Assembly (NCBI RefSeq): GCF_003918875.1
Contig: NW_025766994.1
Span: 1,116,001-1,180,000 of the forward strand
Direction: 5' to 3'
DNA: 64,000 nt
Origin: Haliotis rubra
Taxonomy: Eukaryota
Shown here: positions 38,008 to 42,785 of the stretch, one piece after another
Numbering within the stretch: position 1 is the first letter of the stretch
Layout of the letters: each line of letters starts with the position of its first letter
The notes under the pieces: model-generated
Seen by the model: the letters and a program-made list of their open reading frames with translations, nothing else
Told to the model about the DNA's origin: nothing
Databases searched by the model: none
Made by a program: the position numbers and the translations under genes

Positions 38008-41000
38008 TCACAGTGTGTATTTAAACTGAAGGGGACAGTCGGCCATCTTCTCCTGGTACAGCTGATCAAACCACTCGTTCTGAGCGACAGTGAACCAGTT
38101 CTTCCAATCACCCACTCCACCTGGGAAGAAAACAGTTTACGTGCAGACATTGTCTCAATACCATCGATTCGCATGTAAAGTTTTACACTATGGACTTCCA
38201 TCCAGATATGCCATGTGCACTAGTACTGCACAAGCAGGAAGGGAGCGACCACTGATCGTTCTCAACAATGTTATGAAGGAAGGAGATGTTGAGAGGATTT
38301 GTTTAATTAATTTTAGGCACGTCTTTACGTAAGTGGCACTTTGCAAAAAGTTATTCTCATGAGCAGCAAATTCTTATTGTCCAGGGGGTTGGCTAAGAAA
38401 TACATAACATGACCTAAGAAAAGGGTCATAACTCATCCATACCTTTTCTAAAAACTTTGATTCCACTATCGTCCTCCTTGAGAGTCCTCATGGCGGCTTT
38501 AGTTGTGTTGTTGCACACTTTGGACAGGAAGTCATCCGTCCTCTTTACATCCAGGAACTCATAAATCCTCCTCATCTCTCGCATCTGATCCTGAACGGAC
38601 ATCAAGTTAAATATTTACATCTCAAACCTCATGTCATTATTCATGATATTACAACCCAGACTGATGCCTAAAGGCGTCATTTCATCTTGTCGTAAGAGGC
38701 GACTAACGTGATCGGGTAGTCAGACTCGCCGACTTGGTTGACATATGTCAGTCATTGTATCCCAGTTGCGGAGGTTGATGCTCATGCTGCTGATCACAGG
38801 AGTGTCTGGTCTAGACTCGATTATTCACAGACCACCACTGTCGACATATATGTGAATGCGGCGTAAAAGCCAATCATCAACCCATGCACTTGCCTCAGGT
38901 GCCACGTGTTGCCCCAATATACCTGCTTAATATACCACGGGTTGCTACATCTCAAACTTCATGTCATTATTTATGATAGTACAACCCAGACTCATCCCTA
39001 GAAGCGTCATTTCATCTTGACTTGTTTGTTGCCCCTTGCCCACGTGTTGCCCCCATACACTTGAAACCCGTGATGATCTGGGTTAGAATTGATCTTCAGT
39101 AACCCATGTCTGTTGTAAGAGGCGACTAATGTGATCGGGCGGTTAGGCTCCCTGGCTTGGTTGACACATGTCATCATATCTCAGTTGCGGAGATCGATGT
39201 TCATGCTGTTGATCACAGGAGTGTCAGGTTTAGACTTGATTATTTACAGACCACCATCATATAGGTATAATATTGCTGAGTGCAGCATTAAATTAAACTC
39301 AATCAATCATCAACCTCTGCCCTTGTATAATGTGAGCACGTGTTACCCAAATATACCTGCTTAATATATCCACGTGTTGTCCCCATGTAGCTGCTTGATA
39401 TCTCCACGTGTTGCCCCCATTTACCTGCTTAATGTATCTACACTCAAAAGCAATTTGTGTTCACTCAATGCCTTTAAGCTGAAATGCTGCTGACTGAAGC
39501 ATTCATGTAACTTCTGGCAAGAAAACGTCGTGCACCTCACCTCCTTAATGTCTTCATACAAGATAGTCAGCACAGGCAGATCAGGATTGTCTTTTTTCAC
39601 CTGCTCCCAGTCGAGAACATAGTCCATCCAGGATCCATATGCAACTGTAACAGAAGGAAAGGCCAGGGAAAAATACCTAAAGAAGTCGTCTTTCATCGAT
39701 GTATTTACAGCAAGAAGATTACAAAGATAAACCTCTTGGAAAACGACTCAGTGTGTCCTTCGACACAGTTCAAAGCGATGTTCATATTCCTCTTCAAACC
39801 GATGTAATATACACTCACCCAATCACATATTTACAGATTATCACAGAGATCATCAAAGACATCACCATTCAAAGAGACCGTCAGCAAAATGGAATATTTC
39901 ACATCACAATACTTGCTACACTCACTCACTTAATACAGGATTACAGAACAGATTTTCTCGAGTGGAAAGATTGATGGAATAATGCTCTTGGGGTAAGGTC
40001 GGATTCTACAAGTGCGTTAACATATGTTTAATAGGATATACTCATATCTTTATTCGTGTGGAAATTTTATGTGCATTCAATCACTCGGAAAACAACGAAT
40101 TATAAGAAAGTCTTTCCAAGAAGGATTATAAGAAATAAGAGCACAGAGGAATATTTAAAGATAAAGGATTACAAGAAGATAACTAGTTATTAGACAAATG
40201 CTTAGTCTCTGAATATATATAATTTTGATAGGAACAAACAAGCCCATTTAAATTGAAAAGGAGCCCTAGGGAGACCAGAGATCTAGACTTGCTTTATTTA
40301 GGGCTTTAACACTGCAGAGAGAGCTTGGCAGTAGGGAAAATAATGTGGTTCAGGGACAGTGAGACAGACTAACTAGTTATAGATGATCACAGACAGAACG
40401 GCACTTACACTTTCCCTGAAAGAAGGGTCGAACATAGTTCTTCCACTCCCCTTTGTAGTTGGCAAATGGAAGCGTTCGGATGACGTTATAGAGTGAAACA
40501 GCTACATCTTTTGGATTTCTTAGAACAATGATGACTTTTAGTTTCTTATTACAAACGTCATCTGGCAGATGTTTCATCAGCAAATGAGTGTTGAGGATCC
40601 TGGGAGACGAGAGGTCGGCTAACTCCTCCTCTGACGTCCTTTCCATGAAGGTTTGGACCTTTGTGTTGTCGTCGTGGATTATCCCCCCTGCGAGGAGCTC
40701 TCTTGTTATTTCAAATACCCAGTGGGTTTCTGGAGAGAAAGCAAACCTGACAAATCACCCACGAATCTGAATCAGTTATCAGGGAAATACAAATCTTTAC
40801 CATGCATTGCTATCTCTCTCACGGGCTGGACTGTGATGCGACCTAAACAGAAATATATATTCCGTGGCATCAAAATGAACAAAAAGTGAGCAAAACGTTA
40901 AGAATGATGGGTGTGAAGTATGGATCAAGGTCTTCTTTTAACACTGAATGTATGTGTTGGCTTGACTGAATTCTGGCAAACTGTTCTTTCTAGAATTCGT

Positions 41001-42785
41001 GATAGGATCGGCTTGAGTTGTATCGGTGTGTATATGATACGATGGGCTTGAGTGGGATTGCTGTGGGCGTGATGTGGGCTTGTGTGGGATTTGTATGGAT
41101 GTGATGGGTTGGTATGGTGAGATGACCTTGATTGGGATTGATGTGGATGTGATTCGATTACCATGTGTGGGATTGGTGTGGGTGTGATGTGATGACCCTG
41201 TGTGGGATTAGTGTGGGTGTGATGTGATGTCCTTGTGTGGAACTGATGTGGGTGTGACAGTTTGGGCTTGAGTTGGATCGGTGTCATTGTCACAAGATAG
41301 GCTTTAGTGACGTTGGTGTGGTTGTGATGAGATGACCTTGTGTGGGATTGATGTGGGTGTGACAGATTGGGCTTGAGCTGGATTGGTGTGAGTGTGAGAG
41401 GTTTGGCTTGAGTAATTGTCACAGGATAAGTGAACAGATCTATCCTACCAGATTTGGTAAAAAGTTTCATGGTATCTGATGTTACCTGATTGAGGATATG
41501 AGCAAATTAAGATGTCGTCGTCACGGATTCCCACTGAACGTACACCGTCGATGCCGATTCCATCGGGGAAGTTGGGTATTAAGAAGCTGTTGTCACTTAA
41601 GAACGTGAGGGTTTCACCGCCGTCGTCCACTGCTTCCACTATCTGTTTCTGATGTGAGAGAAAACCTAGTCATGTGTGAATAATTCAGCTGAAAACATAG
41701 GTAGTATTCCTTCTGTTTTACAGTTCCCTGTCATATGTATTTCATGTCGACGTATTGCAAATATATCACCAAGTCCTTGTGATACATTGTGTTTGTGTTG
41801 CATTTCCTCACAGAACAGGGCTGCTCGGTTCACAAATAACTATTCACCTACCACTGGAATACTGCTGTATCCGCGTTAAACAAACAAACAAACACAAGCC
41901 TTGAAAACAAAATATGTTCATTCCATTTTTAAGAATTCTCTAGATCTGTTCTCCAAAGTAGCTTTGGTTTCAGTCTGTCTCAAAAGACACGATTGATTGT
42001 TTGTCATCATCCTGAGATTGCATTGATAGTAGCTGACAATATTAATCAGTCGTCGCCATCATACTGTTGGAATGTTACTGATTGTAAACGTTAACTGAGA
42101 ATCATGTACAAAATAGCACTATGAATCCCCATTAAATCTCCCAAAGTCCTCTTTAATACAAAGGAACGAAGAGGAACTGGATACAGTCAACACCCACTAC
42201 AAATAAGTCTCCGAAGGTCAACCTCAGTATTTCACTTATCCGTTTGAACACTAAGTAAACCTCTCGCACACACAAATGGACCCCACTGTATCGTAAGTGA
42301 AAATGCATTGGTGGTACAATCTGCTGCTATTTACTTTTCGTCAAATTACAGGCAGGTTACTTTCACCTCAGCAGGTTGGTTGTGCATCTTTTTATTTCCG
42401 TGTGATATGTAAACGCCCAAGTTGGTGCTACATTCTATCTGGTTTTGTTTGTTATTGAACGTTACAGTCACCAGTATTTCTGCTGTGTCATCGTAGTCTG
42501 AAAATAAAGTTACCAGGCAAGCTGTCTGCAGTGAACGAGGACACAATTGTCGTGATTGGTAGTACGTGACGGGCATCACGTATCTGTTTATTTTGATGGT
42601 AAGTTGTTTTTTAGGTGTAAATCAAAACACGTATTCATTCACTGTGTCACAGGGGCCTTAATCTAATTGAGTCTCTGTAACATGAAAGCTATGATCATCG
42701 GTTGGTCACACACAACGATATGCTGAGTCATACATACAGTTATACATGTATATTAAGCTCCTACTGAAGAACTTACTTGAGACAT
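38008..42785 (-). CDS. Cytosolic sulfotransferase-like copy F, open 285-aa frame with degenerate PAPS-binding loop (SYPQSETHW)
   Basis: Exons 42785-42777, 41648-41486, 40729-40409, 39644-39541, 38590-38443, 38120-38008 (858 nt, GT-AG, no stops); [31 protein letters not shown] retained. Confidence 0.88.
38686..38883 (+). mobile_element. SINE-like family 2, 5'-truncated
   Basis: Begins CTTGTCGTAAGAGGCGACTAA. Confidence 0.75.
39066..39312 (+). mobile_element. SINE-like family 2
   Basis: ACCCGTGATGATCTGGGTTAGAATTGATCTTCAG... to (TCAA)n tail. Confidence 0.82.
41005..41425. repeat. Intron-2 minisatellite (G/T-rich on + strand)
   Basis: GGGCTTGAGTTGGATTGGTGTGGGTGTGA-like units; source of the spurious ORF 40925-41470. 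Confidence 0.8.

Follow-up and report, generated by a model that had tools for sequence, protein, structure and literature searches.

What does a sulfotransferase become when its gene is intact and its cofactor-binding loop is not? This question is raised by copy F, a gene for a cytosolic sulfotransferase that the blacklip abalone, Haliotis rubra, encodes in six exons on the minus strand. It lies in a 64,000-nucleotide stretch of contig NW_025766994.1 (assembly GCF_003918875.1, positions 1,116,001 to 1,180,000 of the forward strand), which is referred to here as the window and to which all positions below refer. An earlier, sequence-only reading had noticed two radical substitutions in the loop that binds 3′-phosphoadenosine 5′-phosphosulfate (PAPS) and had proposed F as a candidate pseudo-enzyme. 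The analysis described here leads us to consider it somewhat probable, on balance, that F is instead a recently inactivated paralogue or a loss-of-function allele. The evidence consists of the rarity of the altered residues, the presence of ancestral residues in the transcript of a near relative, and the decay of neighboring copies in a birth-and-death sulfotransferase array where most copies around F are dead.

Three altered residues in the cofactor pocket of an intact gene

The coding sequence of F comprises six exons that total 858 nt, corresponding to 285 amino acids plus a stop codon, and every intron is bounded by GT..AG; the intact frame and splice sites described by the sequence-only reading are thus confirmed. 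The encoded protein has exactly the sequence of P0007, "sulfotransferase 1A3-like [Haliotis rubra]," whose cluster in the protein collection has a single member from a single contig. Copy F is therefore an already annotated NCBI gene model. Residues 46 to 277 match Pfam PF00685, Sulfotransfer_1 (E=1.5e-51, 175.7 bits with a cut-off of 22), and the protein matches human SULT1A structures in the PDB over its full length (E ~1e-42).

The 5′-phosphosulfate loop of F reads S53-Y-P-Q56-S-E58-T-H-W61 (SYPQSETHW), whereas copies B and G read TYPKSGTHW, as had been deduced earlier from the end of exon 2 and the start of exon 3. The changed plus-strand bases are g at 41492 (t in the paralogues) and t at 40729 (c in the paralogues), with a distance between them of 763 bp at the DNA level and 7 nt in the mRNA. 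Exon 2 ends with CCT AAA TCA G in copies A, B, and G and in a partial exon-2 duplicate, and exon 3 opens with GA in copies A, B, C, and G. Alignments to PDB sequences pair the F loop with TYPKSGTTW of human SULT1A2 and SULT1A3. In a MAFFT alignment of 112 sequences (F and 111 homologues), Q56 corresponds to Lys48 and E58 to Gly50 of the 295-residue SULT1A1. Among the other 111 sequences, the Gln56 column holds Lys in 106, Arg in 2, Leu in 1, and a gap in 2, and the Glu58 column holds Gly in all 109 sequences with a residue (109/109). The string PQSET was found in none of the 121 fetched homologues, which come from four other abalone species and beyond.

A third pocket change, absent from the sequence-only reading, replaces Ile or Phe with Lys at residue 230. 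This position aligns with Phe229 of SULT1A2 and is occupied by Phe in 91, Ile in 13, Leu in 4, and Met in 2 of the other 111 sequences, the close abalone paralogues having Ile, Leu, or Met. Judging from the C/T-x-F pattern (Cys282-x-Phe284), Lys230 probably occupies the position of Phe284 in AtSOT18, which makes a hydrophobic contact to the adenine of the product 3′-phosphoadenosine 5′-phosphate (PAP) (PMC5482895). Each of the three residues, Q56, E58, and K230, is seen in F alone among the aligned homologues.

The remainder of the active site is conserved. The earlier statement that the other motifs are intact holds for the catalytic, 3′-phosphate, and dimerization motifs and probably fails at the adenine contact to which Lys230 would correspond. 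The catalytic His is kept (His106 in ILNTHLL, equivalent to H108 of SULT1A1), as are R128, N129, K131, D132, and S136 (R128 and S136 being the equivalents of the 3′-phosphate-binding Arg130 and Ser138 of SULT1A1) and the 3′-phosphate loop residues R247-K248-G249 and G252-D253-W254-K255. The adenine-stacking Trp61 (W53) and the dimer motif KxxxTVxxxE are also present. In total, 11 of the ∼14 PAP-contact positions are kept in F.

In AtSOT18, the side chain of the equivalent Lys and the main chain of the equivalent Gly bind the 5′-phosphate, and a Lys93Ala mutant has no detectable activity (PMC5482895). The contacts that the sequence-only reading had assigned to this Lys and Gly thus agree with the published structure. 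Because of the rarity of Q56 and E58 in their columns and these AtSOT18 data, we infer on good grounds that F has probably lost normal PAPS-dependent sulfuryl transfer, as had been proposed. The exchange of Lys56 for Gln would remove the catalytic lysine that binds the 5′-phosphosulfate, that of Gly58 for Glu would introduce a large, negatively charged side chain at a point where close packing of the loop backbone against the phosphate is required, and that of Ile230 for Lys would put a charge at the hydrophobic adenine contact. Searches of the literature on sulfotransferase pseudoenzymes with PAPS and on Phe229 returned no match.

Ancestral residues in the transcript of a sister taxon

Read evidence was drawn from Logan contigs of sequencing runs, and differences between these contigs and the window were read among the 40 of 254 differences listed. 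None of the runs recorded as RNA contains the stretch, and the runs listed for H. rubra include no RNA run. Run X12, from a second organism (organism B), is RNA by our guess. One X12 contig of 1,633 nt matches the window in five pieces (41485-41648, 40409-40728, 39540-39644, 38441-38589, and 37950-38118), which are exons 2 to 6 of F cut at the exon borders of F. Since the contig matches the exons without the introns, it derives from spliced RNA. It differs from F at 40 of 907 aligned bases (4.4%; 95.6% identical), and the paralogues in the window differ from F by 4 to 20% per exon (80 to 96% identical). The contig shares with F the private residue Tyr209 (38562), where contigs of the other three runs have a paralogue-like Cys codon. 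On these sequence similarities, we take the contig to represent the probable F orthologue in a sister taxon; the protein collection contains no protein of this orthologue. Organism B is probably the greenlip abalone, a guess with which the run dates fit through a study of the tentacle transcriptome (PMC5405107).

Three junctions in the X12 contig are shifted relative to F, only at places where the first bases of the intron repeat the first bases of the next exon. The shift at the exon 2/3 junction (41485/40728 instead of 41486/40729) implies a G in the transcript in place of the A of F. The junction accordingly reads TCA GGA ACC, or Ser-Gly-Thr, with Gly at residue 58. At 38499 the transcript has ATA, encoding Ile230, and all four runs agree; at 40610 it encodes Pro98. 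Given that Gly58 and Ile230 are present in the transcript of the nearest relative, no fewer than two of the pocket changes in F are recent. A-to-I RNA editing, through which GAA would be read as GGA at 40729, is a less likely source of the transcript G than a genomic difference, since nearby differences such as A to T at 38499 cannot be editing.

Possible allelic variation in H. rubra contigs

The sequence-only reading had called for both loop bases to be confirmed in reads. A contig from H. rubra run X1 spans 40717-40871 with 0 differences and backs the AA of the Glu codon; the run may come from the assembled animal, and the contig is then not independent support.

Other X1 contigs suggest variation within F. 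Position 40610 is heterozygous in X1 (11 of 20.6; Ser98/Pro98). In exon 3, a C6 homopolymer (G6 on the gene strand) lies at 40683-40688 in codons Gly72-Gly73, and the sole X1 contig over this run lacks one base (depth 10.6 of 10.6, 1 contig). The missing base may reflect a frameshift allele or a wrong homopolymer length in the assembly. Together, the deletion and the heterozygous site suggest that F has more than one allele, of which one may be frameshifted. Divergence from the window reaches ∼4% in several X1 contigs, the same level as in organism B. At 39996-40150 and 42222-42494, X1 contigs differ by 4 to 6%, with several variants common to organism B, and other X1 contigs match perfectly. 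This pattern suggests either strongly diverged haplotypes or introgression between the two abalone taxa.

At 38495 and 38499, the H. rubra contigs all carry paralogue-like letters. These letters were not taken as evidence against Lys230 because the paralogous exon 5 is 92 to 93% identical to that of F and passes the 92% threshold, and because the contigs drop minor paths.

Constraint along the F branch

To describe the history of F, the gene was set against the two further full-length genes of the window, B and G, and a change was assigned to one lineage where the other two agree. Pairwise Nei-Gojobori ratios of nonsynonymous to synonymous divergence (omega) among the three copies are all about 0.44 to 0.46. 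The F lineage has 14 synonymous and 28 nonsynonymous changes (omega 0.53), the B lineage 14 and 26 (0.49), and the G lineage 10 and 17 (0.45). Copy F has thus been under constraint over most of its branch, with no neutral drift for the length of the branch. This omega covers the whole branch; since it resembles those of B and G, it reflects the time before the pocket changes. The sequence-only reading had named a ratio near 1 in an untranscribed F as grounds against its proposal; the observed ratio is not near 1 but reflects that earlier time.

The F-specific changes are unevenly distributed. Exon 3 has 17 nonsynonymous and 2 synonymous changes, versus 11 and 12 elsewhere (Fisher p=0.008). Outside exon 3, F is below neutrality (p=0.0009); the nonsynonymous excess within exon 3 does not differ significantly from neutrality in the upward direction (p=0.21). 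The private exon-3 changes cluster at residues 76 to 98, which would correspond to the substrate-loop region of SULT structures.

Seventeen residues of F are private, being seen in 0 of 15 close abalone sequences. Four of them (G24S, K56Q, G58E, and F/I230K) occupy alignment positions with ≥80% conservation in the family, the highest such count among 16 close sequences. Three of the 17 fall on the ∼14 PAP-contact positions, compared with ∼0.8 expected at random (Poisson P ∼0.05). In a protein tree, F falls with G and three proteins of H. asinina in an unresolved cluster, and no one-to-one F orthologue was found in H. asinina, H. rufescens, or H. cracherodii.

Competing explanations

Under the explanation that we prefer, F would have been a working SULT1-like gene through most of its history. 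Its inactivation would be very recent and confined to the H. rubra lineage, or even to some H. rubra haplotypes, with no new function gained. The frame, splice sites, and other motifs would then be intact only for want of elapsed time, and F would be the newest casualty of a birth-and-death tandem array, in which the next pseudogene would be expected to resemble just such a copy, its catalytic residues newly lost. Several observations weigh against this explanation. The reference frame of F shows no disruption, its ten splice sites all conform to the consensus, and the whole-branch omega of 0.53 departs from the neutral ratio expected of an unprocessed pseudogene. Transcription and correct splicing of the F orthologue in the relative show that the genus has not silenced this locus; that evidence comes from organism B and not from the H. 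rubra allele itself, and it gives ancestral states for residues 58 and 230 and not for 56. The one-base deletion in the C6 run rests on a single contig, and Logan contigs may be paralogue chimeras from which minor variants have been dropped. Finally, three hits on PAP contacts could mean directed remodeling, not decay. The last point belongs to the view that F is a non-catalytic pseudo-enzyme maintained by selection, its pocket closed or neutralized, which binds a ligand or modulates neighbors such as B through KxxxTVxxxE. The intact frame and splice sites, the retained catalytic His, R128/S136, RKG-GDWK, and dimer motif, the pocket clustering of private changes, and their concentration in the exon-3 segment all fit such a protein. 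So do the atypical H. asinina protein P0015, with KV for RK, and the precedent of SULT4A1, which does not bind PAP, is highly conserved, and binds catecholamines (PMC1847840). We nevertheless regard selection for this role as unlikely. With Gly58 and Ile230 in the transcript of the relative, the new states show no conservation, and the SULT4A1-like pattern of an altered pocket shared among orthologues was not found; no orthologue with the Q/E/K states is present in H. asinina, H. rufescens, or H. cracherodii; the exon-3 excess does not exceed neutrality; and one H. rubra run may hold a frameshift allele. A newly born version of the same idea, to which we assign a small likelihood, is that the three charge-changing substitutions K56Q, G58E, and I230K have, within a short time, refilled and neutralized the pocket, possibly through a Glu58-Lys230 ion pair, and that the protein, stable in its sulfotransferase fold, would sequester phenolic or amine ligands or form inactive heterodimers (for example, with B). 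If true, F would be a snapshot of the first steps toward non-catalytic sulfotransferases like SULT4A1.

Two further explanations concern what F can still do and whether its sequence is correct. Copy F might remain an enzyme, with weak PAPS-dependent activity or with another donor or chemistry that uses Gln56, Glu58, and Lys230, as might be expected from its retained PAP contacts, His106, and 3′-phosphate loop and from the two homologues that tolerate Arg at the lysine column. This is improbable, because none of the 111 homologues has Gln at column 56 or a residue other than Gly at column 58, a Lys-to-Ala exchange abolishes detectable activity in AtSOT18 (PMC5482895), a Glu at the Gly position should repel the phosphosulfate, and the changes are not common to the closest relative. 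It is more doubtful still that the loop of F was created by an error in the reference assembly or belongs to a rare variant, somatic or haplotypic, of the animal sequenced, and is no property of the gene in the species. P0007 is not independent, having come from this very assembly; direct read support reaches the AA of the Glu codon and not base 41492; and the X1 contigs show many differences from the window, with 40610 heterozygous and the exon-3 homopolymer length disputed. Against an artefact stand the contig that matches 40717-40871 without a difference, including that AA, and the improbability that polishing errors, which are mostly homopolymer indels, would produce three single-base changes in three exons. 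The recent inactivation of F thus remains the better fit. Of the fates that the sequence-only reading had offered, the young pseudogene is favored by the youth of the pocket changes and the decay of the array, and no support was obtained for a ligand binder, a regulator, or an altered enzyme: the relative has Gly58 and Ile230, omega is like that of B and G, and the array is mostly dead. The retention of the catalytic His and dimer motif, which had been cited for those roles, is borne out by the alignment.

Gene model of F and the surrounding array

The coordinates of F and its neighbors are listed in Table 1. The true exon 1 of F was located through the MSQ N terminus of P0007. A conserved block that precedes a number of the copies (at 42328-42478 for F, 56443-56560 for G, and 15170-15266 for B) was rejected as exon 1, as it resembles a short interspersed element and has no ATG or donor. 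The 5′ untranslated region reaches ∼100 nt upstream, judging by the sister-taxon transcript, which has 109 nt before exon 2. An exon 3 ending at AAG was rejected as out of frame; in all copies the donor lies 1 base later (AAAGT|gtaagt), a junction confirmed by the H. rubra protein P0001 (...QGK-Y-MYGSW). Exon 3 encodes the catalytic His, RNPKDVAVS, and the substrate loops, and the 3′-phosphate loop RKGGVGDWK is split over exons 5 and 6. An imperfect, GTGTGGGATTGATGTGGGTGTGA-rich minisatellite with 35-, 70-, and 105-nt units occupies about half of intron 2 (41043-41413). Introns 4 and 3 (window 38547-39342 and 40139-40536) contain very high-copy repeats, with a summed contig depth of 1e5 to 8e5 in all DNA runs versus ∼30 to 40 in the unique flanks, and hundreds of joints and loose ends map to the borders of these repeats.

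Table 1. Coordinates of copy F, its altered codons, and neighboring sulfotransferase sequences in the window
Feature	Position	Strand	Remarks
F exon 1, coding part	42777..42785	-	ATGTCTCAA = ATG TCT CAA = Met-Ser-Gln; donor gtaagt; found by pattern search
F exon 2	41486..41648	-	163 nt; final bases TAT CCT CAA TCA G; donor gtaac
F intron 2	40730..41485	-	756 nt
F exon 3	40409..40729	-	321 nt; opens AA ACC CAC TGG; acceptor ctccag
F exon 4	39541..39644	-	104 nt
F exon 5	38443..38590	-	148 nt
F exon 6	38008..38120	-	dimer motif at 38074-38103; stop TGA
Gln56 codon CAA	41490..41492	-	SULT1A1 Lys48 position; paralogues AAA
Glu58 codon G|AA, last two bases	40728..40729	-	first base 41486; SULT1A1 Gly50 position; paralogues G|GA
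Lys230 codon AAA	38498..38500	-	SULT1A1 Phe229 position and probable AtSOT18 Phe284 position (adenine contact)
F His106 codon	40584-40586	-	catalytic His
Copy A	4065-8659	+	two frameshifts: exon 2, +1 insertion near 4171; exon 3, -1 deletion near 6045
Copy B	16130-11921	-	intact; identical to H. rubra P0003, "sulfotransferase 1A2-like"
Copy C	18413-26530	+	exon 1 present
Orphan exon 1	29610	-	ATGTCTCAA; no exons 2-6 downstream
Fragment D	32456-31887	-	exons 5-6 only; stop TGA changed to GGA
Copy G	59655-54462 (exons 1-3), 46252-44711 (exons 4-6)	-	8.2 kb between exons 3 and 4
Copy H	runs off window		identical to H. rubra P0001

Between its two frameshifts, copy A is out of frame with several stops, and both PKSGT and the catalytic His fall in this stretch. 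Unless the two frameshifts are both errors of the assembly, A is an unprocessed pseudogene. Exon 2 of copy C was looked for in the window and not found. Copy G may be two fragments and not one gene: the gap between its exons 3 and 4 contrasts with 0.4 to 0.8 kb for the equivalent introns in other copies. It has a partial second exon 2 at 55862-55793, and its best match among the H. rubra proteins in the collection is ≤84%. A segmental duplication of ∼2.8 kb with ∼90% identity links 29056-31888 to the region upstream of F (42214-44712, minus strand), copying the 3′ end of the upstream gene (D versus G, exons 5-6) and exon 1 (29610 versus 42785 of F).

Departures from the cofactor motifs occur elsewhere among abalone sulfotransferases. 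Near-invariant cofactor-loop positions have received private hits in the neighbors of F too. Copy B has Gly for the Asp of GDWK (P0003 residue 254; exon at 11921-12033, minus strand), a position at which 110 of the 111 other sequences have Asp. Haliotis asinina P0015, a close homologue, has Lys-Val for the invariant Arg-Lys of the RKG 3′-phosphate loop (R248K, K249V) and is another abalone sulfotransferase with a non-canonical cofactor motif.

Comparison with known systems

If F is a fresh loss-of-function copy, it represents an ordinary turnover step of a detoxification-gene array, and its chief value is as a warning that the label "sulfotransferase 1A3-like" in the database promises more than the protein delivers. 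Should fixation and constraint of the pocket changes be borne out, F would offer a very recent natural case of an enzyme turning into a non-catalytic protein, with the canonical orthologue in a hybridizing sister species as a built-in control; with the other atypical abalone sulfotransferases, abalone would then be useful for studying the loss of cofactor sites.

Human SULT1A1, 1A2, and 1A3 (PDB 1ls6, 1z29, and 1cjm) are ∼40% identical to F and have in common with it the catalytic His, the Arg/Ser pair, RKGxxGDWK, Trp53, and KxxxTVxxxE, whereas F has Gln for Lys48, Glu for Gly50, and Lys at Phe229. Paralogues B and G have the same six exons, splice phases, and MSQ start, with 80 to 83% protein identity, and differ in keeping PKSGT and Ile230; 17 residues are private to F, including 4 at strongly conserved positions. 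Human SULT4A1, the best-known non-catalytic precedent, resembles F in having an altered cofactor pocket in an otherwise intact sulfotransferase fold (PMC1847840). Its lesions are Trp53Leu and a shortened 3′-phosphate loop, and it is deeply conserved in vertebrates; those of F lie in the 5′-phosphosulfate loop and at the adenine contact, and at least two are absent from the nearest relative. The unprocessed pseudogenes of tandem detoxification arrays provide a further parallel: F likewise stands among frameshifted or truncated copies (A, C, D, and the orphan exon 1) and has recent radical hits at invariant sites, and it differs from such pseudogenes in having no stop or frameshift in the reference and a whole-branch omega of ∼0.5 instead of 1.

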